From the NCBI RefSeq assembly GCF_006345805.1, contig NC_042997.1, forward strand, positions 206,832,001-206,896,000: DNA of 64,000 nucleotides, written 5' to 3'. Position numbers and translations under genes: made by a program. The notes under the pieces were generated by a model, which saw only the letters and a list, made by a program, of their open reading frames with translations, did not search any database and had not been told where the DNA came from. This DNA comes from Octopus sinensis. Its lineage: Eukaryota. Positions 3,837 through 33,825 of this stretch are shown here, piece after piece (position 1 is the stretch's first letter; the number at the start of each line of letters is the position of its first letter).

Positions 3837-3891
3837 CTGATGATGCAGTTGAACCATCTGTTGAAATTTCTTGGAAATATTCTTTAAATTT
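3837..3891 (-). CDS. PARP14: Macro-PARP exon D' (55 nt, phase 0-1), KFKEYFQEISTDGSTASS, end of macrodomain 3
   Basis: Acceptor ttttttctaacag, donor gtaaat; same length and phase as paralogous exon 16688-16742, with similar start (KFxEY). Confidence 0.8.
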
Positions 3892-4567
3892 CTGTTAGAA
3901 AAAATAATTTCCTAATTAATTTCTGTTAATTACTATGCAATGTTTTAACTCATTGTTTCTATCACAAATATTGTTTTAAATTAATATTTCCATTTATTGT
4001 ATCATAGAATAACTTCCTATGAGGAAGAGGCTTTTGAATATTCTGTTGTTTGGGGAGGAATTTTTACTTACAGAATAAAAAGAAAAGAAATTTGCTTGTT
4101 TAAGTGACTGTAGAAAATTATTCATGGAATTGAATTTGGTATCAAGATTCCATGTTATGCCCAAACACCAGCTTAATAATGACAAACCGATTTTACTTAA
4201 TTCCTCATTATTTTCAAAACTGTTTAAAACCAAAGGAAGAACATTTCTGTTGAAACAGACTGGCTTTGAGTAAATTCCAGTGAATTACTGGTATGTCAAC
4301 AGTGCTTTACTTCAATGCTATATATACTGTCCTACAGAGTATATCTGCAGATGTGTACCCAACACTGTGGGTATAGATAAAAGGAGAAAGAAGAAAAGGA
4401 ACGGGTCCAGCCAAACAATCTTTTCCTGTCTCCAACACATATTGTATACAGAAAGTGTTTATATGACACTCAGTTTATATACACTCGTCTTGCTTACACC
4501 CATCTATGCATAGACAATATAGTTTATAGAGACATGATGTTTACATTACTATAAAAATATATATATA

Positions 4568-5550
4568 CCGATCTCGCTCAGAGTAAAAGGCAGACTGTAT
4601 GATGCATGTGTACGTACAGCCATGTTACATGGTAGTGAAACTTGGGCTGTGACTGCTGAGGATTTGCATAAGCTCGCAAGAAATGAAGCTAGTATGCTCC
4701 GATGGATGTGTAACATCAGTGTTCATAATCGACAGAGTGTAAGTACCTTGAGAGAAAAGTTGAACCTAAGAAGCATCAGTTGTTGTGTGCAAGAGAGACG
4801 TTTGCGCTGGTATGGTCATGTGATGAGAATGGCTGAAGATAGTTGTGTGCGAAAGTGCCACACCCTGGCAGTTGAGGGGACCTGTGGAAGAGGTAGACCC
4901 AGGAAAACCTGGGTCGAGGTGGTGAAGCACGACCTTCGAACTTTAGGTCTCACCAAGGAAATGACCAGAGACCGAGACCTTTGGAAGTATGCTGTGCGTG
5001 AGAAAACCCGGCAAGACCAGTGAGAACAGTTAAAATCAAAATCAAACCAAATCAATTCATATATCAGTAAACAGAACCAAATTGAGGTCGATCAACATCA
5101 GTGGGAATTGCAGCTGTGGTTAAGCGAACCATCCGATCGTGGTCGTTGCCGGCGCTGCCCCGTCTAGCCTCCGTGTCGGTGGAACGTAAAAGCACCATCC
5201 GTTCGTGTCCGTTGCCAGCCTCGCCTGGCCCCCGTGCAGGTGACACGTAAAAGCACAATCCGTTCGTGGCCGTTTGCCAGCTCTGTCTGGCTCCCGTGTC
5301 GGTGGCACGTAAAAGCACCATCCGTTCGTGTCCGTTTGCCAACTCTGTCTGGCACCTGTGCTGGTGGCACGTAAAAAGCACCCACTACACTCACGGAGTG
5401 GTTGGCGTTAGGAAGGGCATCCAGCCGTAGAAACACTGCCAGATCTGACTGGGCCTGATGAAGCCTTCCAGCTTCGCAGACCCCAGTTGAACCGTCCAAC
5501 CCATGCTAGCATGGAAAACGGACGCTAAATGAAGATGATGATGATGAAGA
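4568..5550 (+). mobile_element. RTE-clade LINE, 5'-truncated (ORF C-terminus, repeat-rich 3' UTR, (GAT)n tail)
   Basis: MLHGSETWAV...RRLRWYGHVMRM...GRGRPRKTW, typical RTE C-terminus; tail gatgatgatgat near 5535. Confidence 0.9.
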
Positions 5551-5694
5551 CATTTACATTAGTCTGTACACACAGATATTGTACATCCATTACATTGATA
5601 TGAGTGTCTATGGTTCTGTATGTGTGGTTAGCCCTGAAACGATGTAATCTCAAGGAAAAATGAATTTGATATTCAAAATCTGCATCTCAATGAA

Positions 5695-5819
5695 GGGTCA
5701 TCCATAAATAATAATATGAAAATATAATTTTCAATGAGAACTCAACTACAAATTTCTTTCTCTCTATTTGTTACCATGAATCTCTGTCTCTTATTTTTCT
5801 CTCTGCCTCTCTCTCTCCC

Positions 5820-5851
<32 letters not shown>

Positions 5852-7045
5852 TGTATTATCTCTCACGCATTGCTTTCATACTGTTTAAAACAATGCCTTC
5901 TAAAGTTTACTTCCGTTGTATCACAGCTTCTATGCACAAACCCTGTTTTTTCATTGCTCTTCTGACCTCGTCTCTAGAATTCATATTTTTTACATCCAAA
6001 TCATCTTTGAAGACTGCAGAATAAATGATAATCAGATGGAACAGTGTCTGACGAATATGGTGGGTGGGGCATCGTTTCCCATTCAAACTGCTCCAGCCTT
6101 TGGAATGTCATTCTTGCTGTATGTGGCCAAACATTATCCTGATGGAAGAACACCTTTCGTCTTGAAACCAAAGATGGTCGTTGTTCTTCTAGTGCTGACT
6201 TAAACTGCTCAAGCTTCTCACTGTAGATCTCCTTCATTATCGTTTGGTTTGGCTTTAAAAGTTCAAAGTGGACTAAACCTTTCATATCTCACAAAACTGA
6301 TAACAGCACCTTATATGGGTGAAGACCTTTTTTCTCCTGGGGTGTCGGTCTTTCTCCTTTTCCTACCCACTGTCTTCAGTACTTGACATTTTTATAGAGA
6401 ACCCATTTCTTGTCACCAGTCGCTATTCAGTCCAAAAAAGATTCATTCATGAGATGTGACAGCAAAGAAGAGCACACCTTCACTCTCAGTGCATGATTAG
6501 ACTCAGAAAGTTTGTGAGGAAATCATTGACACAATTTGCTGTTTGCTGAGTTGTCTGATGGCATGCAGGTGTCGATGAATGGTTGAATGACCAAATCCAA
6601 GCTTCTCTGTTAGTTCCTTAACAGTTATGATGGGATTTTGTTCCACCAGGCTTTGCAGGACATCCTCATAGAGCTCTACAGATCTTCCAGAATGAGGGTT
6701 GTCTTCTAGGCTGTAGTTTCCGACTGAGAATTTGTGGAACCACCATTGACACTGGTTTACACTTATTGTCCGATCCCCATTTACTGCATTCCTCGCACAT
6801 TCCATTGCGTTGCTTCCTTTCTTGAACTCATTAAGCAAAATATGCCAAATATGATCCTTTGTAACTTCCATTGTAGCTTTGAAAAAATAACTGTTAAAAT
6901 TGAACTGCACTCTTCAACACTTGCATTAAGAATAATTAAAAGGTAAAATTACTACCTGCTTTTATAGCAAGTTGATGCTGGTAGTTTATCCCATCCCCCT
7001 CCGACTTTCAGTTCATGCAACGGAAAAAAATCACATTATTTATGG
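5695..7045 (-). mobile_element. Degenerate mariner (Tc1/mariner) DNA transposon
   Basis: HTH region HIWHILLNEFKKG; FHQDNVWPHTAR and PHPPYSSDTVPSDYHLF (HDNARPH and YSPDLAPSD-like); 12-nt inverted core tccataaataat near 5700 and attatttatgga near 7034. Ends approximate. Confidence 0.8.
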
Positions 7046-8795
7046 AAAAGAAATGTGTCCGCATGGATGATGGCTCACTTGCATTTAATGAGGCTGCAAA
7101 GAGAGAGACTTGGAGACACCACTATGAAAGGTTGCCAAATGAAGAGAATGAATGGGAGAAAGAGAGCCTGCCAAATGTCGACCCAACAGAGGGACCAGCT
7201 ATCTAAATCTACAGTACCTTAGTAGATAAAGCAATTAAGGGTATGAAGACAGGGAAAGCCCCAGTCCATCAGGAATCATTGCAGAGGTGCTTATAATATC
7301 TGGTGGTGTAGGCTATAGTCTAGTCCAGTGGTTCCCAAATTATGAGTTGCGACCCATCTGTGGGTCACGAACAGAATCTTAGTGGGTCGTAAAAAGTTAT
7401 AAAATTACACATTAGCTTTGATTAACTGTTGTCTATCGAGATACTCAGTAGAGTTAAGTGAGTCGTCATAAACTGGTGTGATAAATAGTGGGTCGCGACT
7501 CTAAAAAGTTTGGGAACCACTGGTCTAGTCACTCGTGTAGTCAATGTGGTGATACATGAAGGAGTCATACCCAATGACTGGTGTAGCAGCACCTTGGTTA
7601 ACTTCTACAAAGGTAAAAGTGATGCATTAGAAAGAAATAATTAGAGAGAGAGTCAGTTTAGACAAGATACAGTTTGGGTTTGTGCCAGGGAAATGCACCA
7701 GTGATGCTATATTTCTAGTAAGACGGCTGCAGGAGAAATACCTAGCCAAAGATAAACCTCTGTACTTGGCTTTTGTTAATATGGAGAAAGCCTTTGACAG
7801 GGTTTCCGATCCATTATTTGGTGGTCAGTGTGGAAACTAGGGATAGAGGAATTGTTAGTGAGAGCTGTGCAAGACATGTACAGGGATACCCCGGGCAAAG
7901 TGCAGAGAGCTCCTACCTCTGCTGTTAACAAAGGGCCTCTTGCTCCAAGTGAAAGGTAGACTGTATGACGCATGTGTGAGAACAGCCATGCTACACGGCA
8001 GTGAAACATGGGCTGTGACAGTTGAGGACATGCATAAGGCTGCAAGGAATGAAGCCAGTATGCTCCACTGGATGTGTAATGTCAGTGTGGATACACAACA
8101 GAGTTTAAGAACCCTGAGAGAAAAGTTGGACATAAGAATCATCAGATGTGGTGTGCAAGAGAGACGACTGGTATGGTCATGTGCTGCATATGGATGAGGA
8201 TAGCTGTGTGAAAGAGTGTCACACCCTAGCAGTGGAGGGAACTTGTGGAAGAGGTAAACCCAGGAAGACCAGGAATGAGGTGGTGAAGAATGACCATGAA
8301 ATTTTGGAACACACGGAGGTGATAACAAGCAACCAAGATCTTTGGAGATATGCTGTACTTGAGAAGACCTGGCAAGCCAAGTGAGACCATAACCATAGCC
8401 TATGCCAGTGTAATATAATCAGCCCATTTAAGAGTACTCATCAATCATTGGGTGATAAACTGCACTTGCGAAGACCTGTTGAGTCAAGTGAAGTCATTGT
8501 GGTGGACAATGCCAGTACTGCCTGACTGGCATCTGTGTCGGTGACACGTAAAAAGCACCATTTGAGTGAGGTTGTTGCCAGTGCCACATGACTGGCCCCC
8601 ATGCCAGTCGTACATAAAAAGGACCCACTACACTCTCGGAGTGGCTGGTATTGGGAAAGGCATCCAGCTATAGAAACCTTGCCAGATCAGGTTGGAGCCT
8701 GGTGCAGCCTTCAGGCTTGCCAGTCCTCAGTCAAACCATCTAACCCATGCTAGCATGGAAAGCAGACATTAAACAATGATGATGATGATGATGAT
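7046..8795 (+). mobile_element. Degenerate RTE LINE with internal deletions and (GAT)n tail
   Basis: EKKCVRMDDG, GRLYDACVRTAMLHGSETW, GRGKPRKT fragments; colinear with 43850-46755. Confidence 0.85.
7326..7522. mobile_element. hAT-type MITE, 197 bp, inserted in the RTE copy
   Basis: 14-bp TIRs cagtggttcccaaa / tttgggaaccactg; 8-bp TSD gtctagtc at 7318-7325 and 7523-7530. Confidence 0.9.
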
Positions 8796-9596
8796 ATTCC
8801 ACCCATCTCTGCTGGATGTAGGGTTTGCTGACCCCTGCTACTTTGTTGAACACTCGACCGTATCAGATTTTATATTTTGGAGATTTCCCCACTCCGACAG
8901 GAGGTTGAGTTCCACTCAGTTACATTGATGTTATTGGAAAAGACACAGAACAAGAAACAGAGTGAAAGGGGGGGAGGCAGACAGAGATTATTGGTGTGGC
9001 ATTGTTTAAATGTGTCATGATTGTGGCAGCTTGGAGGAGGAAAAGAGTGAAAGGAAGACAGACATCACTGTCTTCAAATCCGCTGAATCAGAACTGACTC
9101 AGGGTTAAATAAGAACAATAAAATCAGCAGCCAAACTGTAAAGAAGTCCTTCAGTGTTACCAATTCTTGTAGAGTTGGTTTTCGATACAACAACAACAAC
9201 AACAACAAACAAAACATTCTTAGCTTCAAATGTTGCAATGGAATATTTCAGAAGCAAGAATTTGGTGATGGGAAATGGTATAATGAAAGGATAAAGCACA
9301 ACAAAATATAATGAACAGCATTAAAGGTAGCATGAAGAAAGGTACCCAGGACATGCTGTGAAGCGGTTGGCATTAGGAATGGCATCCAGCCATAGAAACC
9401 ATGCCAAAGCAGACACTGGGGTTCAATAAACCCTTGTGGCTCATTGGAGCCAGTCAAAATGTTGCACCCACTACAAAATGGAACAAGGGCTGTAAATGAG
9501 GATCATTTCTACTTCTTTTCTTTATTGTGGAATATCACTTTGGTAAATTCCAAGAATATCAACATAAAACAACAAACAACAAAAACATCAACCAAC

Positions 9597-9825
9597 CTTT
9601 ACTATTTCTGTGTCTTGAGGATAAACCACAAAGTAAACATCTTTGATCCTGGCTTGAATTTTGATTTGAGTAGTTTTTCACTGCTTCATACATAGTTCTG
9701 GGTAGGTTTTCAATGGGGTACTTCAATATCCCAGCACCTAATATAGGAAATGCAAGGCTTTTTGCTCCCAATTCCTCAGCTTTTTTCAGACAAATGGTTA
9801 TTATTTCAGTCAAGTTTGCCAGAAT
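9597..9825 (-). CDS. PARP14: Macro-PARP exon C' (macrodomain 3, C-terminal half); one extra base at 9648-9649
   Basis: ILANLTEIITICLKKAEELGAKSLAFPILGAGILKYP...; 229 nt versus 228 nt in paralog 32391-32618; AG/GT boundaries conserved. Confidence 0.9.
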
Positions 9826-10646
9826 CTAAAAAAAAAGATAATTGTTTAGTAATTGATAATGAACATTTTATTACAGGAAGGAATCGTTAAGTTGTAATTA
9901 ATATATTCTTTGATTCCACACAGAATTTGTTGTTCTAAACAGAAATGTTTTACACATTTGAATAACATTAATCAACTTCTAGTGATTATTGGATTAACAG
10001 ATCATGTGTTCATTGGATTAACACAGATCATGTGACAGAAGGATCAACACAGATCATATGATAGCAGGAAGTCTGGTCTGAGTGAAGATATGGATGCCAT
10101 GAATAGAAAGAGAAATGTTCCAAGATTTGGTGGTTGCACAGTGTAATTCAGGTGGAATTTTGTAATTAACAAAAAAAAAAACCAGTAATATGGAAGAGGG
10201 GAGATTAATTATTATTTACAAGAGGGAAATCTGGGTGAGAACATACTGCAAGAAGCAACAAAACCACCCACAAGGCAGGGTGCCACAGGCACAAAAGACT
10301 CTCCACTGCACACAAGAGACTATGGTTGAGTCGAAATGTTCAGGGAATATCTACAATAGAGTCTACATCAATTTCAAACAACCAGAATCCATGCTTTGGA
10401 AACTGTACAGAATACCACAACACCAGACTGTCACACTGTAGCCCAAACTGTACATCACTGGACATCAAAGTACATGCTACTGTCTTGAATCAGACGGAGG
10501 TGTTGTATGACTGGAAAAACAGATCTGTGGGTTGTGCAGAGTTTTATGGACAATTCCATTCATGCCACAGGGATGCTGGATCAATGAAAACCTAGGGTTG
10601 TACAACAACTCTTTCAGTCAAACAATATCATATGATTGATACTTAC

Positions 10647-10874
10647 TGAATGAGAAGAATTTTCATCCCAGTCAGGTAATGCCAGATGAAATACATTGTC
10701 ACATTTGAGGTTGTATCCTTTAGTGATGGCTATTTCAGATGTAGAAATACCTTGAGGATATTTCTGGTTACATTCATCTTGTATCTCAGGACCAGCAGCA
10801 TTGAGAATAAATTTGGAGATAGAACCATCATTAAGCTGGAGCTGTTTATTGGTGCTGTTAACGATGACATCAAC
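10647..10874 (-). CDS. PARP14: Macro-PARP exon B' (macrodomain 3, N-terminal half)
   Basis: VDVIVNSTNKQLQLNDGSISKFILNAAGPEIQDEC...NVFHLALPDW; 228 nt; ttttttag acceptor, gtaagt donor. Confidence 0.9.
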
Positions 10875-11155
10875 CTAAAAAAGTAATTTATGTTAAACAG
10901 CTAAGGAACATTCCGTGGAGAGAAGAGAGATACATTGTTGCAGTTGATATTGTTGTTAAGAAAGGCTCTACAGAATGGCTGTAGTAAGTTTGAGGTTGTT
11001 AAAGTTAGCAAAAGATATACTCAAGATATCAGATGTGAAGGAAATAAAATGTTTGAGTTTGATTGAGAAAATGTTTTAATTAACTGTAATGATTCCTCAT
11101 TTGGAAATGAAATAACAATTAAATATAAATAAGTTACATGAATCTATTTACTCAC

Positions 11156-11250
11156 AAATGCATTCGAAATTGAATCAATCGTTAGGTTTATTTTGATGCC
11201 AGCATTTTCTCTGGATGTCACATTAGTTTTGGGTGTCGACGATACGGTGT
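11156..11250 (-). CDS. PARP14: Macro-PARP exon A' (95 nt, phase 1-0), linker and first strand of macrodomain 3
   Basis: (D)TVSSTPKTNVTSRENAGIKINLTIDSISNAF; acceptor ttgtttattttcag, donor gtgagt. Confidence 0.85.
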
Positions 11251-12199
11251 CTGAAAATAAACAAATATCAGTGTTTGTATATATATACAGACACATAAAT
11301 ATATATACATATATACACATATCTCTTCTTTAATATAGACATTATATATATACACACACACAAATGCACACACACACACACACACATATATGTATATATA
11401 TATACACACTCACATATATATATACATATATATACATATATATATAGACCAATTATTCTCATTATCCCATCATGGTTTAATGTCCATATTCCATCCTGGT
11501 CCAAGTTGTACAAAATGATACAAAAACACACATCTGTCATAGCAAAAGTGAGGTCCTAAATGCATTGTGGTTATTCATGCCCATGCTGGGCCCTACACCC
11601 ACATCTGTCCCTGTGAAGCATCCCCTTCACCACATCTCATCTTCCTAACACCCATCCCTCCATTACTCTTCTAACTACGGTCCTACTTTGCTGCTGTAAC
11701 CATTTGAGAGCAGAATCTGCACATATTCACCACCACCACCACCCTTTCGCTAATACCAGTTGCCTCACTTGCATCATCATCTCCGTCCATACAACCTTCC
11801 ATGGATCATCCCTTTCTCTGCTTTCACTAATCTCCCCCTCCCCACCTCTTATATACACCTTACTCTGCCAGGCTTCATGTTTAACACTTCTCCTATCTGC
11901 ATACCAGGCTGGTGTTCAGCGCAGGATAGCTCTTTTAAACTCTTGAGGATAAAGGAGTCCACTTGAGTCTTTTTTTAAAAGATCCCACTAGAGATGGTGT
12001 CTTGATAAAAATACTGGGGGTTGTGACACCTTATCAACACTTTCTTCTGCATGAGTAATGGATAAAAGAATACAAACAACAGCATAAACGAGGACAAAAC
12101 TACAGGTGAGAGACTGTCACCCAGCAGGTGTCCCGTGGCTCAGCAGCACAGGCCCAGTCTTCATTATACAGCTGCTAGAACAAAATGGACTCAGGCATT

Positions 12200-13510
12200 G
12201 AATACAGCTGTCATGGTGTTATTTTTTTGAGTTAACCTGTTCATGATGGAGGGAAGCCCCGTAAGAAGATATAGAAAGCGGATGCATGACTTGAGGATGG
12301 AGAAGCAGGGCTCAGATATCAACTGCGGAAACAACAAAAACCCTAAACTGGAAACATCCAGGCTGGAATAGGGTCCAGGGGTATTGGCTGGAAAATTTCC
12401 CAGCACTACACAAAAGAATAGCTGCACAAATGGATAAAATGATCACCGACAGGGTGGAAGAGGCTGAGCACAGATAAAATGGTTGTTTGCCAAAAAGAAT
12501 GCCAGTAAAAGTAATGCAGTAGATAATTAGCAGCCTGTCACCTGCCTAGCTCTCATGTGGAAGCTGAATAATAGCTAATTGTGTGTCTAACTTGCTGGAA
12601 ATGAATGAAAAACTGCCAGTTGAACAGAGGGATGCTGGAGGAAAAGCTGAGGGACAAACGCTCAACTTCTGATAGACAGAATGGTGCTGAACGACAGCAC
12701 GAAAAGACTCACTAATCTGGGAATGGTGTGTATCGATTATAAGAAAGTGTGTGACATGGTTCCCCATTCTTGGATTTTAGAAAGTCTTGTGTTGGTACAG
12801 GCGTCTGATGACATCTTGAATTATGTGAGAATATCTCAGAAGAAGCAAATTAATTATAGGAAGTAGACTCAATGGAAAAAAAAAACAAGATCAGGACAAT
12901 GAACACATGGGCTGATTCCTTAATGCAATATGGCACAGGTGTTGTTAGGTGAACAAAAAAAACGAACTTGAGGAAGTGGACAGGAATAGAGGAAGAGTAA
13001 TGACAATTAACAAGGAACCTACACACTACTGACAGGTTGTATGTACCTAGGAAGAGGGGAGGAAGAGGATGCAAGATCTGTGTTGCCAATTAGAAGTCTG
13101 GGATGATAATATCACTTGCTTGCTGCAGTTGAAAACAACAACAGGATACCTATGGAAAATATGATGCACGTGAAAACATTTAAGAAACAAGATGAAGAAG
13201 AAAGAATAAACAATTGGAAAATGGAAACAATGAATGAGCAATAGGTGAGAGAAATCAAAGGAAAAGACAAGATCAACACTTGGAGATGGCTTAGAGAAAG
13301 TGATCTGAAAGGATACACTGAGGGATTGATATGCAGCTGCTGCCGGAAACAAGCTCTGAGAATTATTACATCAAGTTCCAAATAGATAAGCGTAGCAAAT
13401 TGCACCTTTGGAGGATGTGTGGAAGCAAAAATGGAACAACTCCATATATTGTGAGGGAATGTAGCAAGGTGGCCCAAAATGCACTAGGGAAGGAAACTAG
13501 TAAAAAGGGG
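12200..13510 (+). mobile_element. Highly degenerate R4/Dong-like LINE of a second subfamily
   Basis: NWKHPG..VQGYWLENF and MVCIDYKKVCDMVPHSWILESL fragments; many indels; ends approximate. Confidence 0.65.
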
Positions 13511-13694
13511 CCAGTTTCCATGGCATTTAAGTTCTCCAGCTGGATGGGCCACTCTCTGTCACAGGATTATTCAGTTTTGGTAGCTGAGTGAACTGGAGCA
13601 ACATGAAGTGAAGGGTTTTGCTCAAGAATACAATGCATCACCTGGTCCTTAATGAGGGGTTATGTCAATCTTTATAAAATATAAGAATAATAAC

Positions 13695-13880: not shown

Positions 13881-13896
13881 TTCTGCCAGATCAACA

Positions 13897-13906
<10 letters not shown>

Positions 13907-13973
<67 letters not shown>

Positions 13974-14024: not shown

Positions 14025-16616
14025 ACCAAGAACTGGGCAAAAATAAAATAGAAGTCACTGCAGCACCAACGGCAGAAGAATTGGAAGAATTCTGGAAAGA
14101 AATATGGTCGGCGAACGAACAGCCAAAAAAAAGGAGTATGAAAATAACAAACTCGGCATCTGAACAACTTTGGACCCCCATAACAACTGAAGAGGTCACC
14201 CAGGCACTGCAAAAACTAAGCAACTGGAAGGCACCTGGGCATGACAAGATCCCCAACTTCTGGTTGAAATATCTAACAGGAATGCACAAAAAGCTGGCTG
14301 AAAACTTTAACAGCATACTAGCAGAGCCAGAGACAATGCCTGAATGGCTCACGAAGGGGAAAACCATCTTAATTCCCAAATCAAATGAAACAACAAAACC
14401 AGAAAACTACAGACCAATAACCTGCCTCCCTACTATGTTCAAGGCATTTACTGCAGTGATATCGCAAAGGCTGAACAAGCACCTGGACGAAAACAAACTG
14501 TTCCCAGAAGAGCAGAAAGGATGCCGCAAGGGCTCATATGGCTGTAAAGATCAACTAATGATTAATAAAGCCGTAACTGAAGACAGCCACAGAAAGAAGA
14601 AAGGCCTCAGTATGGCCTGGATTGACTACAAAAAGGCGTTTGATAGCATCCCCCACACATGGATCCTCGAAACACTAGCCATTAACAAAGTAGCACCAAC
14701 AATCATAAAATTCATAGAGCACTCTATGAATAAATGGCAAACAGTCCTACACCTCCAAACAAAAGAGGGACTCATGAAAACCAAAGACATCCCCATTAGA
14801 AGAGGAATATTCCAGGGAGACACGCTCTCTCCACTCCTTTTCTGCTTGGCACTGTCACCTCTATCTGATATGCTAAATAGAACTGGATGCGGATATAAAT
14901 GTTACGGCAAAATGATCAGCCACCTTTTATATATGGATGACCTAAAACTATACGCTGCAAATGACAAACAGCTGGAAACACTATTAAAGACAGTTCATGG
15001 ATTTACCAAAGAAATAGATATGAAATTTGGATTAGAAAAATGCGCCAAAGTAACCATGAAAAGAGGAAAACTAGTTAAGAGTAACAACATCACACTAGAT
15101 AAAACCAATGAAATAAAAGAATTAGACCAAAGCCAAACTTACAAATACTTAGGAATCCATGAACTAGATAAAACACAACACACACAAATGAAAGAGAATA
15201 AAAAAAGAATATTATAGACGAGTTAGATCAATACTAAAAACAGAGCTCAATGCTAAAAACAAGATAATAGGTATCAACACTTTAGCTGTCCCAGTTATAA
15301 GTTACAGCTACAATATCCTTAACTGGACACGAAATGAACTGTCCAAAATAGATAGGAAAACAAGAAAAATACTGACAGGATCTAGGATGCATCACCCAAA
15401 ATCTGACATAGAAAGACTATATATACAACGTATAGAAGGTGGTAGAGGCCTTATACAGCTGGAAAACTACTATAAAATAACCACCATAGGACTGCAAAAA
15501 TACCTACTTCAGAAGGAAGGAAAACTGATCCAGATAGCTGCAAAACACGAGCAAAACAAAAAACTGTTCTCAGTATTTAAGGAAGCTGACAAATACAAAC
15601 AAGAAATCATACCACCTAATAAACACAAAGAAGAAGAAGAAGAAGATGATGAAGAAACAACAAAAGCTATAAAACAAATGAAATCCAAACTAAAAATAGA
15701 ACAGCAACGAGCCATGATAAAACGATGGCAAGAAAAGCTCATTCGTGGCAAATACTGGACTAAACTAAATGCAAAAGAAATAGACAAAGAAAAATCCCAG
15801 CAATGGTTGAGAAGCTCAGGACTCAAAGCAGAAACAGAGGGATTTTTAATTGCAGCACAAGACCAAAGCCTCCCCACCAGAAATTACCAAAAACATGTAA
15901 TGAAAAGAAATATTACAAGTAACTGCAGAATATGTGGAGATGGACAAGAAACAATAAATCATATTATCTCTAGCTGCCCAGTCCTGGCTGAGAAGGAATA
16001 TATTCACAGACATGACAGAGTTGGAACCTACATACATTGGAAGCTATGCCAACATTATGGAATAACAACAGAAAAAAGATGGTATAGGCACACACCAGAA
16101 AAGGTCACAGAAAACGAGAAAGCAACCATACTCTGGGATATGCCGATACACACAGATAGAGAAATTAAGGCCAACAGACCAGATATAGTTGTCAGAGATC
16201 ATGAAGAAAAAAAATGCTTTCTAATTGATGTATCAATACCGGCAGATGACAACGTGTCTCTAAAAGAAATGGAGAAACTCTCAAAATACAAAGACCTGGA
16301 AATAGAGGTAACCAGAATGTGGAACCTGAAAACAGAAACAATTCCTATCATAGTAGGTGCATTAGGCATGATAAAAAAATATTCAGACAAATACATAACA
16401 AAAACACCAGGACTTATAAACACATATAACATACAGAAAATTGCACTACTAGGCACTGCACACATCCTACGCAGAACACTTTCCATACAATAACCATCAG
16501 AGCATCACAACAAATCACAGCACATACTCAAAGCACACAGAGCTGCGCTCGGTAGTGAAGTGAAAGCACGCTATAAAAATAAAACTACTGAATAATAATA
16601 ATAATAATAATAATAA
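14025..16616 (+). mobile_element. R4/Dong-like LINE copy 2, 5'-truncated, nearly intact ORF (one frameshift in an A-run near 15195), (AAT)n tail
   Basis: ORFs 14081-15217 (RT: GIFQGDTLSP, YMDD) and 15387-16493 (CCHC knuckle, RPDIV..IDVSIP endonuclease). Confidence 0.95.
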
Positions 16617-16687
16617 TCAGTAATGTTTAACAGAGAAAGACATGACAAGGCACCATAATATTCAATATTAACAAACAAATTGTTTAC

Positions 16688-16742
16688 CTCTTGGAAGAAG
16701 TCCTTCATTTTTCTGTCTGTTTAGGAGATATTCATGAAATTT
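16688..16742 (-). CDS. PARP14: Macro-PARP exon D (55 nt, phase 0-1), KFHEYLLNRQKNEGLLPR, end of macrodomain 2
   Basis: Acceptor tttttttccccttttaaaag, donor gtaaac; supplies the phase 0-1 link between exons 32391-32618 and 11156-11250. Confidence 0.8.
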
Positions 16743-19112: not shown

Positions 19113-19113
<1 letters not shown>

Positions 19114-24031: not shown

Positions 24032-24119
24032 AATATATATTTATATATTTTATCATTTTCTCATTTTATTAAAATTTTCTTTCATTTGAGCATTCTGCAT
24101 TTAAAAAAAAATTTTTCCT

Positions 24120-24169
<50 letters not shown>

Positions 24170-25954
24170 CACACATGCACACACACACACACATATATAT
24201 ACACATGTATGTATATGTGTACATTCATATTTATTATATCAAAGACAATGTCTTAATGTGTTTGTGTATTACTGCTGCACCGATCATTATGTAATTTGGA
24301 ACGCCAAATTGAAGCTTAGGGAGAAGGGTAATGCTGTGTGTTTCATACAATTTCCTGGACCAAAATTACTGAATGGATCCTTATGATATTTGAAACTTAG
24401 ATTCAATGCATAACGGCGGGTATAATGCAATATGTTTAGTTTAAATTTCAGATGGCTTAGAGGGGGCAGAACCCCCCACCCCCAATGAAAATTCATAAAT
24501 TTTCAATGTTGATGAAATTTTAACCATGGGTAATTGACACACATCAAGAAGTATTCTCAAAGTTTCCACTTCACATGAGGTTTCTAAGACACCCTAATGG
24601 GGGCCTTGACTCCCAAATTTTAGTAATTTCTTTCATGATTCAAAACTAAGTCAAAAGTACTGAATGGATCTTTACGAAATTTGGAAATTATATTCTATGC
24701 ATAAGGGCCATAACCCCCATGACAATTCATATATTTTTGCTGTTGATGAAATTTTAACCATAGATATTAGATACAAATGAAGTAATATTTATAAAATTTA
24801 ATCTTCTTACAAGCTAGAAGACCCCTTCATGGGGACTTAACACCTACAATTTTGTCCTTTTATCTAAGCAAAAACGAATATAATTGTAATTCAATGGTAC
24901 AACAGTGTAAGAGTTTGCTTTGACATACACTTACATTGTGATTTCTGCAATGTTGTGCATAAATTGTCAAGTAAATGAGAGGCATCTTTGCCTTCACTGA
25001 TTCAGTTGCAAAGTGTTGAGTAAAGTTATTTGATTGCAGATCTCCTTTCAGTCTTTTTGTTATCGCTGGGTCACACATAGTCCCCAGATGGTAACATTGA
25101 TTTCAAGGCCTTCCCAGATGAGTGACTGGTTATTCAAAGACATTTATATATTGTATATATATTCTGTCCAGTTACGTATCAGTATAGTGGTCATTTGCAA
25201 ACTCCAGAGGTGACACTTTAATTTCTCCTTAACCCTCACGTCACACAGTTGTTAATGTTTATTTCAGTTGGGTCACGCCCTTCCAATTGCTATAGATTCG
25301 TAATGCATCTTACAGCTGTGCCTGTCACCTGGGTGGTGAGGAATCCTACATTGGGAGTGGTAACGACTAGGGTAGGGTAGCTGACTGCTTATTGTGATCA
25401 TTCGTCTTTTGGTTTCCTGTAGCTTTGCTCTCTTTTACAAACCCAGTGAACATATATTTCCTATTTCAAAGAAATTCAAACAATAGATATAAGACCCAAA
25501 TTAAAACGATTCTCAACAATTCAACTTCTCTGGTTGACATTAAGATGCCCACCCCCAACAGGGGCCTTAACTCTCACATTTTAGAGCTTCATGACCTCCA
25601 TTTTTCAGGTGCAAAATCCTTTTTACAGGTTGTATAAGACTGGAATTTTGGAATCTGTGCATAAAAATTAATAGTATGGGATACATGTGGCACGATTACA
25701 ATTCTTTTAGGGTGTGTAAAGAGGGAAATAACCCTCATCTGCAATTTTGATGAAATTCGAAACATAGATATTCCAGTTCATTACAGAAAATATAACAGAA
25801 AAAAAGTCTAATTCTTCAATTGTATGTAACTCGGGCAACGCCAGGTAACTCTGCTAGTCTTTAATTAACTTGCTGGATATGAATTATCTTTAATAAACCT
25901 TCTGGCTAGTAATTATAATTAATATACCTTCTGGCTATCAATTCACCATCATCA

Positions 25955-28215
25955 TCATCATTGTCATCATTGTCATCGTTTAACATCTGTTTTCCATACT
26001 GTCATTGGTTGGACAGTTCAACTGGTGTCTCGGAAGCCAGCTGGCTGCACCAGACTCCAGTCAGATCTGGCAGTGTTTCTACAGCTGGATGCCCTTCCTA
26101 ATGCCAAACATTCTGAGAGTGTAGTAGGTGCTTATTTTTACATGCCACTGGCATGAGGGCCACATGGGTCTGGCATCGACCACGTTTGGATGGTGCTTTT
26201 ACGTGCCACTGGCATGGAAGTCAGTCAAGACAGTGCTGGCATCAGGTACCTTTGGATGGTGCTTTTTTTTATGTGCCACTGGCACAGGAGCCAGACAGGT
26301 GACGCTGGCATCAGCCACAACTACAATTTCCATTTGATTGTGGTTTGATTTGATGTTGATGTATGTGACTCAATATGTCTCCTGAAGCATGGCATGTCGC
26401 CCTATGATCCAAGGTACAGAGGGGCTGGTTATGCTACACTGGCGTAGGCGACACCTGTGATCTCACTTTATTTGCTGGGTCTTCTCAGTCACAGAGGTCT
26501 TGGTCTTTCGTCATTGCCTCTGTAAGGCCCAACATTCGATGGTCATGTTTCACCACCTCATCCCATGTCTTACTAGGTCTCCCTCTACCAAGGATTCCTT
26601 CCACTGTTTAGGAGTGGCATTTCTTCAAACAGCTCTCCACATCTATCCGCAGTACATGACCATACCAGCGCAGACGTCTCTCTTGCAAGCCACATCCAAT
26701 GCTTCTTATGTCCAGCATTTCTCTCAGGGCACTTACACTCTGTTGTGCATGCACACTGACATTACACATCCAGCGGATCATGCTAGCTTCATTTCTTTCA
26801 AGCCTACGCATGTCCTCTGCAGCTACAGTCATGTTTCACTACTGTCAGGCATGGCAGTTCACACACATGCATCATACAATCTACCTTTCACTCTGAAAGA
26901 GAGGCCCTTTATCACCAGTAGGGGTTGAAGCTTTCTAAACTTTGCCCAGGCTATTCTTATTCCAGTGGTAACACTCTCTGAGCATCCACCCCCACGACTA
27001 CCTTGGCCACCTAGGTAGCAGAAGCTATCAACTACTTCAAGTTTCTCCCCCTGGCATGTGATGGAATCTGTTTTCTGAGCATCTGTGGTATTTATTGCCC
27101 CATTGCATCTGCTGCACACGAAAGCTATCTTCCCGGTTAATCTTCCTTTGATGTTGATGCACCTCTTATGCATCCATAGCTTACACTGAGTACATCTTAT
27201 GGAGTTTCTACATACACCTTTTCTACAGATTGAGCAGGGCCATTTACCTGAAGGTGTATGTGATGTGTTCGCCTTCCTATTTACTAAGACTTTGGTTTTT
27301 CACAACATTGACTCTAAGGCGCTTCGATTTTAAACCATGCTTCCACACCTGAAGTTTCATCTCTAGTTCTGGTAGCGATTCTGCTATGAGAGCCAGGTCA
27401 TCAACATAGAGGAGCTCCCAGGGGCAACCCATCTTGAATTCCTCTGTTATTGCCTGGAGGACTATGATGAATAAGAGGGGGCTGAGGTCTGATCCTTGGT
27501 GGGCCCCTACTTCAACCCGAAATTCCTCACTATCCTCATTGCTAACCCTAACCTTACTAACAGCATCTCTGCATCGGGCCTGTACAGCCCTTATTAACTC
27601 TTCATCAATCCCTAGTTTCTGCATCGCTCTCCAGATACGGGATCAGGGGACCCTAACAAAGGCTTTCTCCAAGTCCACAAAAGACAAGAACAGGGGTTTC
27701 TCTTGCAGTTGCTGTACCAGAAATATAGCATCAGTGGTGCTTCTACCTGGCACAAAACCAAACTGCATCTCATCTAGGCTAACTCTCTCCCTAATCAGTT
27801 GGGCTATGTCCCTCTCCATGACTTTCATCACCTGATCCAGCAGTTTGACACCCCTGTAGTTATTTCTATCTAAAGCATCTCCTTTACCCCTTGTAGCAGT
27901 TGACTATGGTGCTGCTACACCAGTCATTGGGTATGACTCCTTCATGAACTACCTGGTTTACAGACCGAGTGACTAGGCCATGGCCCACCCCACCAGATAT
28001 TTTAAGCACCTCTGCAGTGATTCCTGATGGGACGGGAGGTGGGGGTGGGGCTTTTCCTGTCTTCATACCCTTAATTGCCTTAACTACAAGGGAGCTGTCT
28101 ATTCGGATAGCTGGTCCCTCTACTGAGTCAACATTTGGCAGGCCCTCCTCCTCCCAGTTATTCTCAACATTCAGCAGTCTTTCATAATGGCTTCTCCAAG
28201 CCTCTTTCTTTTCAC
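25955..28215 (-). mobile_element. Degenerate RTE LINE (RT to 3' UTR)
   Basis: QFGFVPGRSTTDAIFLV, QGSDLSPLLFIIV, LLYVDDLAL, RRLRWYGHV; (ATC)n tail near 25950. Confidence 0.9.
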
Positions 28216-28224
28216 AATCATTAT

Positions 28225-28320
28225 GACTATTATCTATCTTTAATAAGCCTTCTGGCTATCAGTTATTTCTAATAAACCTTCTAACTATTAATTACCTCTA
28301 ATAAGTCTTCTGGCTATTTG
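28225..28320. repeat. Degenerate ~30-bp minisatellite (tctttaataagccttctggctat-like); related pieces at 17450-17535, 17735-17768 and 25858-25942
   Basis: Direct reading of recurring units. Confidence 0.65.
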
Positions 28321-28634
28321 CAACATGAATATTCTGAAATGACGTGAAAGTGTATATATATCGTTGACAGTGAGATTCAGCTATGGTGTCGCTGTTGGAT
28401 GTCTGTCACTGATGGACCCAGGCAGAGTGAAAATACATGATCTGGCAGTTCTGGTGCCAGTAGACAGATGATTGTCATCTGCCAACAATATAAATGTGAG
28501 TGCTTTTATGCACCATGTGTTCATAGGAAAGCTCCTCTCAAGGTAAATAACACAGTAAATAACAGCCTCCACATTTTGTTGGATATAAAGATTGCCATTT
28601 GGTGTTAATACTGCATCTGTTGCTATTGTTTTTA

Positions 28635-28995
28635 ATTGCCTTGATTTAGGTTCAGTCTCAATGTATGGCACCTTGGACAAGTCTCTTCGACTTCAGCCTT
28701 AGGCCAAACAAAGCCCAGTGAATGGGTCTGGTAAGCAGAAACTGAAAGAAGCCTGTCGTACATATGTGTGCAAGTGTTTTTCTCTGCTTTGACATTGTGT
28801 GATAGTTGTAGGCGAGTGTCCCTGTTATGCAAGCAGTGTCCTTTGTTTCTAATATTTTGTAAAATGGGGAAATAGTTACCTCCCTTGGAACGAGGTGAGG
28901 GTTGGTGACAGCAAAGGCGTCAAGCCATAGAAAATCCACCTCAACAAATTCCATCCAATCCATGCAAGCACAGAAAAGTGGATGCTATGATGATG
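28635..28995 (+). mobile_element. tRNA-derived SINE copy with (GAT)n tail
   Basis: B-box-like ggttcagtctc followed by the same body as 47880-48052 and 37260-37520. Confidence 0.6.
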
Positions 28996-29239
28996 ATGGT
29001 GACGGTGGTGGTGGTGGTGATGACACTACAGTTTGTCTTTGCTGCTTTTATTGTGTTTTTCTAGATCTGTTTCTAAAATATCATCATCATCATCATCGTA
29101 ATACATATATAAGAATGTATGTGTGTGTACATGTATGTGTATGTGTCATTATATAGAGAAAGTGAGAGAGAGAGATTCAGAGAAAGAATAAAGATTTGCA
29201 TTCCTTCTTCCAAAAAGATTTCTCTCTCTCTCTCTCAGA

Positions 29240-29730
29240 CAGACAAAGTGTTAGACCACTGAAAGCTGGATATAGTAACCTTTAGGAGGGACAAACAAGA
29301 GTGCCCAATAATTGATGTGGCAGTGCCAGGAGATCAACTTATCATCGTGAAAGAAAGAGAAAATATTGATAAATAAGGAGAGCTGAGAATTGAGATTGCT
29401 AAGATGTGGCAGGTACAAGAGTCAAACATAAAGGTTATCCCTATTGTCATCGGAGTATTGGGTTCAATACCATCCCATCTGAAAACTTTAGAAATACCCT
29501 ACAATCTAGGTGTATTGCAGAAGTCGGCATTACTTGGAATTGGATGCATATTGTGTAAAGTACTCTCTGTCTGAGGTCCTTGTTGTGACTTGACAAACAG
29601 TACAAACCCCCAGTAGACACAATATCTTCAATCAACAACCTCACAATATTGTATACTGTGCAACGTCTATAATAATATTAATAATAATAATAATAACAAT
29701 AATAATAACAATAACAACAACAATAATAAT
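29240..29730 (+). mobile_element. 3' fragment of second-subfamily R4/Dong-like LINE with (AAT/AAC)n tail
   Basis: IIDVAVPGD...ELRIEIAKMWQVQ..KVIPIVIGVLG endonuclease segment. Confidence 0.7.
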
Positions 29731-30785
29731 AGACGAGATGAAGAGCCTGATATGATTACAATAGCTATTTTATTGTTGAACGATATTTCAACAGCAAGCC
29801 TGTCTTTGTCGAGTTCAAAGGGAAAAGTGATAAAAATTCAAAATTATAGAAATTCAAATCTAAAATATGAACAAGAGCAACCAGCGTCCATGCGTTGATG
29901 GAATAACATCATCAATCTTCAAGCTTCAATTTTTCAGGTAGTGAAAAGAAAAAGAAAAAAGAGAAAAAAATAAAAGATAAAGAAAAGGAAAAAGAAGACT
30001 ATTTAATCAAACTGTTTTGTGAAATTCTTTCATTTAATTCGTTCATCCAGGCCATGATTTTAATAACCCACAAACATTTCTCCTCATGCATTTTGAGTAT
30101 TGAAAGTGAAACAGATTTAGAATATTTACTGAGAATATGCACTTTCTCGAGTCTTTTTCAAAATTGCAGCCATTTGATGCAAAATGTTCAGCAAGTTCCG
30201 TCCAATTACCGTTATTGTGCCTGACGTCATATCTGTGCCCATCAAATCTTTTGTTTAATTGTTCTTTTGTGCAACCAACATAAACCAAGTTGTGTTTCGT
30301 GCATTCTGCTGCATACACCAAATGGGAATCTCTACATGTCCCACCTTCTGTATAAATCATAACATTTCTGATATGATACCTGATGGAATTCACTTGATTC
30401 ATGTTGTTGTTCAATGAACAGGGCTTACCTCTTTTGCGGCTGTTTTTCAGGGTACAGCATGCAGGTACCCCAATGTTAGTTTTCTTGGAGTCAGAAGTAG
30501 AGGTTAATAATTCTCTTATATTTTTATTCTGTCTAACAGCTACAATGGGCGACTGAGGAAATATTTGTTTTGAAACAAGGATATTTTACTGCAAAAAGCT
30601 GGTAACTTTCATTCAACACTTTTGAAATGCCAGTGAAATTTTGGTCCTAGATATTCACTAAAGGATTTCTGATGTTATTCCATCAACGCATGGATGCTAG
30701 TTGCTCTTGTTCATATTTTAGATTTGAATTTCTATAATTTTGAATTTTTATCACTTTTCCCTTTGAACTCGACAAAGACAGGCTT
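29730..30785 (-). mobile_element. 5'-truncated Penelope-like element (GIY-YIG fragment) with a 116-bp inverted terminal segment
   Basis: PIVAVRQNKNIRELL...TCRDSHLVYAAECTKHNLVYVGCT; 29796-29911 is the reverse complement of 30670-30785 (2 mismatches). Confidence 0.85.
29776..29818 (-). ncRNA. Atypical minimal hammerhead-like motif in the Penelope pseudo-LTR
   Basis: Minus strand TTGAAC-tcgacaa(a)-GACAG-gcttg-CTGTT-gaaa-tatc-GTTCAA: 6-bp stem I, palindromic ATAT stem III, AUC site; core deviates (U3, C4, A8). Confidence 0.45.
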
Positions 30786-32390
30786 TATCATCATCATCAT
30801 CATCGTTTAACGTCTGCTTTCCATGCTAGCATGGGTTGAACGATTTGACTGAGGACTGGCAAACCAGATGGCTTCTGAAATATCATTCAACCAATGAAAT
30901 ATCTATTGCAATCCCATCATGCTCTTTGTCTTGTCTGTTTACCTTTGAGAAGAGTTACATCCATCCTTTTAAAATATAATAATAATAGAAATCAGTTCTT
31001 TAAAACACTCAGACTGACACCATGCTGAACCTATTCTTAAAAGCGCATGTATTTCCTCTCTCTCTCTGACACTCTGTCTTTTTACCCTTGCTCTCTCTCT
31101 CTCTCTCTCTCTATCACTTTCTTCAATACTTGTGAACATTACTTGTTGACATCATAAAAATCTTCAGCTGAATTCACTCAGTCACTGACCAATTCAAACA
31201 GCAAGCTAGTCTTTCGTTAGATTCAGATTAAGTTAAAACATTTCCCCTTCCTTCTTTGCTGAAATCTTAAATTCCCTCAAACCAGACACCTCACTGAAAT
31301 GCTTGTGACAAAGATAATTCCAGTAAACATAGCCAAGGTGCCGAGGGTTGGTGTGAAACCAAATGACGGATTAAGTTAACAATCCAGCATGGCCATGACA
31401 GGGTTTGAGCTCAGAATGCCAAGGGATGAAACAAATAGCAGAAGGTATCCTATCTGACCCCCTTACAACTCTGCCAGGGACACTTGGCTGCTATTACTAG
31501 CAAGTCAAGCCACAGCATAGAAGCCCCTTAATTGATTCATCCAACTTTGAGAAGAAATGTAAAGAATTGTGGGAAGAGTTTCCAAAGCGTTCCACTTTGA
31601 AGAACAGAAATGAAAGAAAACCATCAGTGTTCTGGTGGTGCCATTAACACATTTTTGGTTGGTCAGTAACCAAAATGGAATTGTTGAAGGATGTTGTGGG
31701 TAGGTAGTGGTAGTGGTGGTGGTTGTAGAGGAGGAGGTAGCTACACTGAATCCATATCAAGTTACAAAGAATTAAATCATGGAATGAAAGAGTTGAAGAA
31801 AACCAAGCTAACCTAAAAGTATGGAAGACAGGGCCATGAGACACATCAAAGATTCCAACATTTCAACTGAAGAATTCTAAGACACCAACAAATAAATTTA
31901 CAAAACTGATTCCATATTTTATCTTCATAATCATTTCCTTCATTAATTACAGAATATGTTTTGGGTTAATTCGAAAAATATCAAGTTGGAATTTGATGTT
32001 GTTGGAAGCTGTGGAAGAGGGAGACTCCAGGAAGACATGGGATGAAGAATTGAAGGCCAATCTCAAAACAGTGAGTCTTATGAAGGAGATGACAAAGGGA
32101 TGAGATATATGGTACATTGCTGTACTCAAGAAGACATGCCCACCACAACAGAATTGATATCCTAATAATGATAATGTTTGTCGATGATGGGCTCTGCCAT
32201 GTCAACCTTCTTCTCCACTCCATACACACACATTTCATCCCCTCACACCCACCATTTCCTCTATCACCTGAAAGCAGAATAGGCACATACTACCCCCACC
32301 CCATCCTGACTACCTTTCCTCCTCCCACCTCCTTTCAGCACCTTCTTCCCCCTCCCTCTGCTGCATAAAACAACAAAAACATCAACCAAC

Positions 32391-32618
32391 CTTTACTATT
32401 TCTGTGTCTTGAGGATAAACAACAAAGTTTACAACTTTGATCTGGCTTGAATTTTGATTTGAGTAGTTTTTCACTGCTTCATACATAATTCCAGGTAGTT
32501 GTTCAATGGGGTACCTCAATTTTCCAGCTCCTAATATGGGAAATGCAAGGCTTTTTGCTCCCATTCTCCCCGCAGTGTATAGACAAATGGTTATTATTTG
32601 AGTCAAGTTTGCCAGAAT
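32391..32618 (-). CDS. PARP14: Macro-PARP exon C (macrodomain 2, C-terminal half)
   Basis: ILANLTQIITICLYTAGRMGAKSLAFPILGAGKLRYP...VVYPQDTEIVK; 228 nt; AG/GT. Confidence 0.9.
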
Positions 32619-33197
32619 CTAAAAGAAAATAAGTGTCTAGTAAATGGTAATAGACATTTTATTAAATTATTTTCTTATTACAGGAAGAAACCATTTAGTT
32701 GTAATAAATATATTCTCTCCTCACAACTGTCATTCCTATCACTCTTTAGTCCTGCAAGGGACAAGGCAACCTCACTCATGTTGCTGCTACAATAAAACAG
32801 ATCCAATCCACCGTGTAAAATGATTGGTGAATGAAGAGAGAGAATGCAGACCCAAGCGGAGTCTTTAGTGTTGGGGAGGACATGACAACCTCTCTAGTGC
32901 TCGTGCCATGACAGAGAAAAACTCACCAATACAGAGAGTAAAACAGAGAAATATGTTTTAATATAGTCTTATTTATCAGTCGCATAACTGTTGTTAGGCC
33001 ATGAGGCTTTTTCCTTCTATTTATATATAAAAGTGTCCTGTTCATCGATATCTTCTGCTTCCTTCCAATGATAACTTGGAAGAACTAATATTAAACAGGA
33101 TGCTGACATTTGCTTTATGATTCTCACACAACATGCATAAGGTTCTCTTCAAACATTAACTGTTTCAATAAATCAATATCATATGATTGATACTTAC

Positions 33198-33425
33198 TAA
33201 ATGAGAATAATTTTCATCCCAGGAAGGTAATGCCAGATGAAATACATTCTTACATTTGAGGTTATATCCTTTAGTGATGGCTATTTTAAACGTAGAAATA
33301 CCTTGAGGATATTTCTGGTTACATTCATCTTGCATCTCGGGACCAGCAGCATTGAGAATAAATTTGGAGATAGAACCATCATTAAGCTGGAGCTGTTTAT
33401 TGGTGCTGTTAACGATGACATCAAC
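33198..33425 (-). CDS. PARP14: Macro-PARP exon B (macrodomain 2, N-terminal half)
   Basis: VDVIVNSTNKQLQLNDGSISKFILNAAGPEMQDEC...; 228 nt; AG/GT. Confidence 0.9.
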
Positions 33426-33706
33426 CTAAAAAAGTAATTTATGTTAAACAGCTAAGGAACATTCCGTGGAGAGAAGAGAGATACATTGTTGCAGTTGATA
33501 TTGTTGTTAAGAAAGGCTCTACAGAATGGCTGTAGTAAGTTTGAGGTTGTTAAAGTTAGCAAAAGATGTACTCAAGATATCAGATGTGAAGGAAATAAAA
33601 TGTTTGAGTTTGACTGAGAAAATGTTTTAATTAACTTTAATGATTCCTCATTTGGAAATGAAATAACAATTAAATATAAATAAGTTACATGAATCTATTT
33701 ACTCAC

Positions 33707-33825
33707 AGATGCATTAGAAATTGAATCAATCGTTAGGTTTATTTTGATGCCAGCATTTTCTCTGGACGTCATAGGGGTTGCTTTCTGTTGTGGACCAGGA
33801 AGGGATGGGTTTAATGATGTGGCTT
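33707..33825 (-). CDS. PARP14: Macro-PARP exon A (119 nt, phase 1-0)
   Basis: (E)ATSLNPSLPGPQQKATPMTSRENAGIKINLTIDSISNAS; acceptor ttgtttattttcag, donor gtgagt. Confidence 0.85.

Follow-up and report, generated by a model that had tools for sequence, protein, structure and literature searches.

The closest described relatives of the locus examined here are the vertebrate macro-PARPs (PARP9, PARP14 and PARP15), a group in which positive selection and gene turnover have been reported, with frequent duplication and loss of PARP14 and PARP15 (PMC4038475); the main text of that study does not contain the term gene conversion. We analysed a stretch of 64,000 nucleotides of the Octopus sinensis genome (GCA_006345805.1, chromosome CM016859.1), referred to below as the window. 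A PARP14-like gene in it, at approximately 206.83-206.87 Mb, contains two copies of a macrodomain cassette of four exons (A, B, C and D), both on the minus strand and referred to as cassettes 2 and 3. An earlier note, made from the letters of the sequence, had interpreted the two copies as an old duplication followed by recent partial gene conversion, with fast-diverging coding sequence under diversifying selection, and had called the gene mollusc-like, which is borne out by the octopus host. Our comparison of these cassettes with others of the same family supports conversion and does not support diversifying selection. We consider it probable that octopus macrodomain cassettes are shuffled by ectopic gene conversion over short tracts, and that the differences among them are mostly old variation held under weak-to-moderate purifying selection.

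Like human PARP14 and the other vertebrate macro-PARPs, the octopus gene encodes tandem macrodomains in one protein, the macro fold being assigned from sequence, and other members of the octopus family (P0013, P0019 and P0020) join a cassette to a PARP catalytic domain. Frequent duplication and loss, as described for PARP14 and PARP15, is likewise seen in the octopus family. Instead of three anciently distinct macrodomains, however, both octopus cassettes are macrodomain-2-like copies of each other; in addition no catalytic exon of this octopus gene was found in the window or over the 6 kb past its left end, and positive selection, the vertebrate hallmark, is not demonstrated in the octopus cassettes. 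In the major histocompatibility complex (MHC), class I and class II genes evolve by birth and death together with interlocus conversion, and their introns are homogenised. The octopus family may resemble them in its many recent copies and pseudogenes, in mosaic exons built of shared blocks and in introns that are more uniform than the ligand-binding exons, but differs in that there is no evidence for balancing selection in the octopus cassettes. Conversion also makes introns more alike than exons in the catarrhine L/M opsins (PMC3213168). As in those genes, the octopus paralogs resemble one another more in an intron than in the exons beside it, the histories read from the two kinds of sequence conflict, and conversion tracts can be detected. 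The opsin exon differences are paralog-specific, stable and kept by purifying selection for spectral tuning, whereas the octopus variants are reshuffled among cassettes and gene copies, and the octopus units, unlike the opsins, include domains repeated within a single gene in addition to separate genes.

Shared blocks and mosaic exons

The architecture given in the earlier note was largely recovered. All splice sites of cassettes 2 and 3 have AG and GT, exon A is entered and exon D is left in phase 1 (a symmetric 1-to-1 unit), and the two B exons are offset by 22551 bp. A length of 228 nt for exons B and C was found for B2, B3 and C2, but not for C3, which has 229 nt because of an extra G. Seven residue differences were counted in exon B, as claimed, and thirteen in exon C, including the change from GAGKLRYP to GAGILKYP, although the exon C count holds only once a frameshift in C3 is silently corrected. 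The D exons are strongly diverged between the cassettes and the B-C introns cannot be aligned, in agreement with the description of exon D and the other introns as strongly diverged.

Comparison of the window with itself gave an ungapped match of 614 bp (10607-11220 against 33158-33771) with 22 mismatches (96.4% identity) that stops abruptly at both ends, together with a weaker match at 84% (9574-9909 against 32368-32716). The tract originally delimited at 10789-11220 and 33340-33771 lies within the first of these, and the ungapped homology runs on from it to 10607. The delimited tract contains exactly 6 differences, where about 6 had been estimated, with three in the A-B intron (11017, 11063 and 11086) and three in exon A (11157, 11165 and 11216). 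The longest perfect run spans 228 bp and ends within exon B, where cassettes 2 and 3 show no difference over the first 86 nt (0/86) and 12 over the remaining 142 nt (12/142; Fisher P=0.004). Identity over these 86 nt was observed solely in the window pair, while all other pairs had 7-13 differences (8-15%). A GENECONV-style permutation test of run length gave P=0.0098 for the window pair, uncorrected, and four states were exclusive to this pair among 8 DNA copies, three of them at 10829-10842. The 228-bp run is likely the core of the latest conversion, and fits a recent intragenic conversion specific to the pair of cassettes in this gene.

Seven further cassettes were compared as DNA. Two of these come from the chromosome that carries the window (L001 at 211.57 Mb and L006 at 211.08 Mb) and three from unplaced O. 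sinensis scaffolds (L005, and two cassettes in L002), while L003 from O. vulgaris and L004 from O. bimaculoides are the only ones from other species. Long collinear non-coding matches showed that L001 and L006 share the flanks of cassette 3, including its B-C intron, and that L003, L005 and L004 share the flanks of cassette 2. We rejected a treatment of the other loci as orthologs, with their blast identity of approximately 93% taken as neutral divergence, because the window is itself O. sinensis and L001, L005, L006 and L002 are thus paralogous copies or haplotigs. The collinear loci are accordingly paralogous gene copies, except for L003 and L004.

The A-B intron was found to be approximately 1-3.6% apart in all cassettes of the sinensis/vulgaris group, whatever the cassette type, with 1.1-3.6% divergence between collinear copies and 1.1-3.2% between the two types. 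The B-C intron diverges by 1.5-4.2% between collinear copies, and between the two types it is unalignable (approximately 47% mismatch). To O. bimaculoides the A-B intron diverges by 6.1-7.5%, with 16-26 gap positions, and the B-C intron by 8.4-9.3%; the cassette-2 type of B-C intron is already present in that species, which along with the unalignable B-C introns agrees with the old duplication proposed earlier. The rate at which the A-B intron evolves is approximately neutral, and since O. bimaculoides split off it has been homogenised between the two types of cassette. The near-identity of the window copies (3 differences in 281 nt), which the earlier note had emphasised, is therefore correct as an observation but is a family-wide property, not special to the window pair and not evidence for one event.

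The exons behave differently from the introns next to them. Every pair of cassettes differs by 8.8-13.6% in exon B, and mean pairwise diversity, 0.7-2.8% across the A-B intron, rises in exon B to 9-14%. It remains at approximately 8-10% over the 40 non-coding nt with which the B-C intron begins, a stretch as diverse as exon B. Within collinear trios, variable sites made up 3.2-5.8% of the B-C intron and 3.6-4.0% of the A-B intron, compared to 14-18% of exon B and 11-16% of exon C, such that the exons of collinear copies are 3-5 times more different than their own introns.

Both exon B and exon C are mosaic, being pieced together from older blocks of variants. In the intron upstream of exon C and in the first approximately 45 nt of this exon, each window cassette groups with its own collinear copy, while in the 3' half cassette 3 groups with L003 and L002b (LPRTM, IKDVYF) and cassette 2 with L001, L006 and L004 (LPGIM, IKVVNF). 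For 26 of the 37 nucleotide differences between the two window copies, both states are present in other cassettes, which indicates that old variants have been reshuffled, and the changes private to one copy or the other number 6 vs 5. The four-gamete minimum number of recombination events (Rmin) was 25 over the A-B block and 5 over exon C, and permutation tests of the pairwise homoplasy index (PHI) type gave P=0.03 and 0.013, and <0.0002 for the concatenation. The protein P0019 is a mosaic of blocks resembling cassette 2 and blocks resembling cassette 3. Taken with the perfect run and the undiverged start of exon B, the mosaic exon C and the significant four-gamete and PHI results uphold the recent partial conversion that had been proposed.

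In several gene copies (L001, L003 and L006) the 3' half of exon C (9597-9700 in cassette 3; 32391-32495 in cassette 2) also looks as if the two cassette types had swapped it reciprocally. In L003 and L005 this swap reaches at least 45 nt into the downstream intron.

The homology that the cassettes share is limited to two short blocks, the first comprising the end of exon A, the A-B intron, and exon B with 40 nt beyond it, and the second comprising exon C with short flanks. A model that would account for these patterns places ectopic short-tract conversion within the two blocks, where it would act among the cassettes of a single gene as well as from one gene copy to another. For the A-B intron, a single homogenising tract shortly before the family expanded would suffice, and a tract of that age would leave the A-B intron with a divergence equal to that of the B-C intron within a type. 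Exchange between types would be possible only in the exonic homology blocks, so that the exons of collinear copies would come to differ far more than their introns. The latest such event would have left the 228-bp perfect run that is seen in the window pair.

Selection, a frameshift and competing explanations

Nei-Gojobori ratios of nonsynonymous to synonymous divergence (dN/dS) for the window copies were 0.77 in exon B (1.08 in its 3' part) and 0.52 in exon C, and the two exons combined gave 0.58. None of the comparisons of the window copies showed a significant nonsynonymous excess (Fisher test), and dN/dS was never significantly >1. Averaged over all pairs the ratio was approximately 0.9 for exon B and 0.45 for exon C, with the reservation that pairwise dN/dS is a blunt measure where sequences recombine. 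Synonymous divergence was 0.07-0.3, several times the divergence of the introns, which speaks for exchange with diverged donors and not for point mutations under selection. Among singleton changes, nonsynonymous to synonymous counts stood at 17:10 for exon B and at 9:13 for exon C, relative to a neutral expectation of approximately 3.8:1, although the split into singleton and shared variants as a proxy for de novo mutation is confounded by limited sampling of a family of >20 cassettes. With these ratios, with singletons below neutral, with most differences shared among cassettes and with exon C3 frameshifted, the claim of fast-diverging coding sequence under diversifying selection was not supported.

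The frameshift arises from the extra G in exon C3 (CCAGGATC, GG at 9648/9649 on the minus strand), at a position where only one G is present in cassette 2 and in each of the seven further cassettes. The frame as assembled is open through A2-B2-C2-D2-A3-B3 into C3, where the +1 shift leads to 17 out-of-frame codons and then to a TAA in exon D3. As assembled, the frameshift truncates the protein before any catalytic domain, while skipping of cassette 3, with D2 spliced to the linker exon E, stays in frame. A profile search matched P0015, an O. sinensis PARP14-like protein of 378 amino acids that is the exact as-assembled translation, including the frameshifted tail (...SSQDQRCLLCGLSSRHRNSKEI, ending '...NSKEI'), and whose locus is 100% identical to positions 1-43772 of the window. 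Since P0015 is the as-assembled translation at this locus, it represents an independent gene model with the same exon chain. The GG may be an indel error in the assembly.

The contrast of exons 3-5 times more variable than both flanking introns in collinear copies is also what would be expected if an old duplication and a recent partial conversion had been followed by selection on the ligand-binding surface of the macrodomains, either diversifying or diversity-maintaining (MHC-like), that kept exon variants apart while the neutral intron became homogenised. The diversity step lies close to the boundary between the intron and exon B, variable residues are found in or beside the glycine-rich loops NDGSIS and GAGKLRYP, which align to the loops of PARP14 macrodomain 2, the dN/dS of approximately 0.8-1.1 in exon B is high for an enzyme fold, and vertebrate macro-PARP macrodomains are under positive selection (PMC4038475). 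We nevertheless regard this explanation as unlikely, for no dN/dS is significantly >1 and exon C gives 0.3-0.7, synonymous divergence is raised as much as nonsynonymous divergence, the non-coding start of the B-C intron (40 nt) matches exon B in diversity (7.9%), nonsynonymous changes are depleted among rare variants, and cassette 3 is frame-disrupted together with several relatives. A related possibility, and in our judgement a rather unlikely one, is a conversion-driven diversity system in which exchange among dozens of cassettes recombines old blocks around the ADP-ribose-binding loops and selection, imposed for example by viral macrodomains or antagonists of ADP-ribosylation, keeps the diversity of exons while neutral introns are homogenised, an invertebrate mode of evolution, resembling that of the MHC, for a protein that reads or erases ADP-ribose. 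Several observations weigh against short-tract shuffling of mostly old variation as the sufficient explanation. Purely neutral conversion would be expected to homogenise exon and intron to a similar degree within one homology block, and a 4-5-fold contrast was seen, which calls for either a chance single tract confined to the intron or selection that preserves the exon variants. The run test does not survive correction for 28 pairs, and an argument that exclusive derived states prove private conversion was tried and is weakened, as these residues (KQLQLND) recur in proteins of family members unsampled as DNA. Incompatibility was found for 52% of site pairs, a value that could partly reflect recurrent mutation. 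The comparison covers 8 cassettes as DNA from a family of >20, with a single assembly per genome, and the unplaced scaffolds L002 and L005 could be divergent haplotigs.

The remaining explanations concern the intron and the integrity of cassette 3. At first sight the A-B intron is more conserved than its flanking exons in six cassettes and three species, and its most diverged copy (5.4-6.5%) belongs to the degenerate pseudo-cassette L002a, as would be the case if a small RNA, a splicing regulator or an editing-complementary sequence were kept by purifying selection. We find such a constrained element very improbable. The intron diverges from O. bimaculoides at an approximately neutral rate and is thus not a conserved element: the range given above for this species, gaps included, lies near that of the presumably neutral B-C intron (7.2% vs 9.0% when the two introns were compared for a conserved non-coding element), its divergence within the sinensis/vulgaris group equals that of B-C introns within a type, no Rfam family came near the gathering score, folding showed no excess on either strand (z +0.30 and -0.25), and the frame continued from exon A hits a stop within three codons. 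An 'ultraconserved functional intron' was rejected on these grounds. The perfect run, the extra G or both could instead have come from mis-mapped polishing reads or a homopolymer error in a long-read assembly, and it is true that GG vs G is a change in homopolymer length, that L006 in the same assembly shows a similar one-base change (TTT to TT) and that 228 bp is short enough for cross-mapping of short reads. This appears quite improbable to us, given that the distinct cassette flanks are collinear with independent loci of O. vulgaris and O. bimaculoides, which makes the duplication itself real, that the A-B intron is 96-99% identical across the assemblies of three species, that other coding exons of the window, amounting to approximately 3.3 kb, are free of frameshifts, and that 6 differences remain within the tract. 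If the frameshift is real, cassette 3 could be a decaying pseudo-cassette that is skipped, or whose transcript is degraded, with differences that reflect relaxed constraint; we hold this to be possible but doubtful. The stop in D3 and the in-frame skip from D2 to E are consistent with decay, as are the independent exon B frameshift of the collinear paralog L006, where the NCBI model starts inside exon C, the broken state of other family members and the absence of catalytic exons within 6 kb downstream, where a long interspersed nuclear element (LINE) is in place. Against this, A3, B3 and every splice site are intact, the Pfam score is higher for cassette 3 than for cassette 2, private changes are few and balanced, and the single lesion could be an assembly error. 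Short-tract conversion of mostly old variants remains the reading that we favour, and the case carries the warning that dN/dS, or an impression of fast divergence, obtained from paralog pairs can mislead in families prone to conversion.

The cassettes, the gene family and the surrounding sequence

Based on sequence similarity the octopus cassettes are predicted macrodomains, most like macrodomain 2 of PARP14. The Pfam Macro family (PF01661, cut-off 22 bits) matched cassette 2 (A2+B2+C2) with 71 bits (E=1e-19) and cassette 3, with the frameshift masked by X, with 81.7 bits (E=5e-23). The best solved relatives were structures of human PARP14 macrodomain 2 (3Q71, 3VFQ domain 2 and 5O2D; E=3e-24 to 1e-23), with a phmmer alignment that covers query residues 4-179, while PARP9 and macrodomains 1 and 3 of PARP14 scored below them. 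The glycine-rich loop AFPILGAGKLRYP aligns with human AFPAIGTGNLGFP, with GAGKLRYP in the octopus vs GTGNLGFP in the human protein.

The gene is a member of a large, recently expanded octopus macro-PARP family of genes and fragments, with at least 11 gene models in O. sinensis and 5 in O. vulgaris, fragments in O. bimaculoides and two models in Argonauta hians. Among the three members with a cassette joined to a PARP catalytic domain, PF00644 was detected in P0019 and P0020. Truncation or frame disruption is found in many members of the family: besides exon C3, it affects exon B of L006 (approximately 8813-9040; a 1-nt deletion, with an NCBI model that begins only inside exon C), the second cassette of P0017 (a frameshift in exon C), P0023 (without part of exon B) and L002a (L002 4926-5612; several frameshifts and no exon C). 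In P0018 from A. hians, two tandem cassettes are identical over approximately their first 108 residues and differ at approximately 8 positions, only in the part equivalent to exon C, so that A and B are homogenised and C is divergent in another octopod genus.

Table 1. Positions in the window of the cassette exons and introns, the longest perfect run, and neighbouring features.
Feature	Position	Strand	Description
Exon A2	33707-33825	-	119 nt, phase 1 entry; linker and start of macrodomain 2; tblastn to octopus homologs; in P0015
A-B intron, cassette 2	33426-33706	-	281 nt; 3 differences from the cassette 3 copy
Exon B2	33198-33425	-	228 nt, phase 0-0
Exon C2	32391-32618	-	228 nt, phase 0-0; GAGKLRYP loop, LPGIM, IKVVNF
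Exon D2	16688-16742	-	55 nt, phase 0-1; KFHEYLLNRQKNEGLLPR; AG/GT sites, translation; in P0015
Exon A3	11156-11250	-	95 nt, phase 1 entry
A-B intron, cassette 3	10875-11155	-	281 nt
Exon B3	10647-10874	-	228 nt, phase 0-0
Exon C3	9597-9825	-	229 nt; GAGILKYP loop, LPRTM, IKDVYF (IKDVYF in the shifted frame only)
Exon D3	3837-3891	-	55 nt; TAA at 3884-3886 ends the reading frame
Linker exon E	2686-2751	-	66 nt, phase 1-1; ASTKSQPGKSQKKKFRHRNVKK; tblastn to P0013
Longest perfect run	10789-11016	-	228 bp, matches 33340-33567; last 142 nt of the intron (3') and first 86 nt of exon B
LINE-like retroelement, first copy	1-2486	+	RVT_1 reverse-transcriptase open reading frames
LINE-like retroelement, second copy	14117-16617	+	92% identical to the first copy; RVT_1 reverse-transcriptase open reading frames
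Partial LINE copy	38198-38557		
Mos1/mariner-type transposase fragment	6506-6913	-	HTH_48; inside the C3-D3 intron
Inverted repeat pair	29796-29917 / 30664-30785		122 bp, 96.7% identical, approximately 750 bp apart; C2-D2 intron
Match to the P0001 N-terminus	11826-11948	-	short; contains a stop
Upstream exon-like open reading frame	48094-49026	-	311 amino acids
Upstream exon-like open reading frame	49064-49741	-	226 amino acids
Satellite	49836-64000		115-bp unit, 123 copies, 98% match; reaches the window end

Exon E is 98.8% identical to its counterpart in L006, and in this paralog (L006/P0013) it precedes the PARP catalytic exons. In the window, and for 6 kb past its left end, no PARP catalytic exon (PF00644) was found, and a LINE is located there instead; the first of the two LINE-like copies sits where the catalytic exons would be expected. 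The second copy ends approximately 70 nt from exon D2. The C3-D3 intron, with its transposase fragment, measures 5.7 kb here vs only approximately 2.3 kb in L006, and the inverted repeats in the C2-D2 intron may be the ends of a small DNA transposon. The short match to the N-terminus of P0001, with its internal stop, suggests that this part of the P0001 model derives from repeat or intronic sequence and not from a true exon.

Two long exon-like open reading frames lie upstream of macrodomain 1. Both are outside the NCBI model P0015, whose start falls inside exon A2, and a Pfam search of the two gave no match. The satellite array starts approximately 95 bp from the more distal of them.

A full-text literature search on octopus PARP14 returned nothing relevant. 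Ectopic conversion, birth-and-death evolution and homogenised introns are already well-known mechanisms, and this locus adds an instance of such known processes from a gene family and a phylum for which they have not been described. We also flag that the current NCBI model of the gene is truncated by the frameshift. An immune role of the octopus genes is suggested solely by their vertebrate relatives. Should the pattern hold across the family, octopuses would have an invertebrate expansion of macro-PARPs, the class that vertebrates deploy in ADP-ribosylation conflicts with viruses, with exons shuffled by gene conversion, and the family would then be a natural system in which to ask whether macrodomain diversity is selected.

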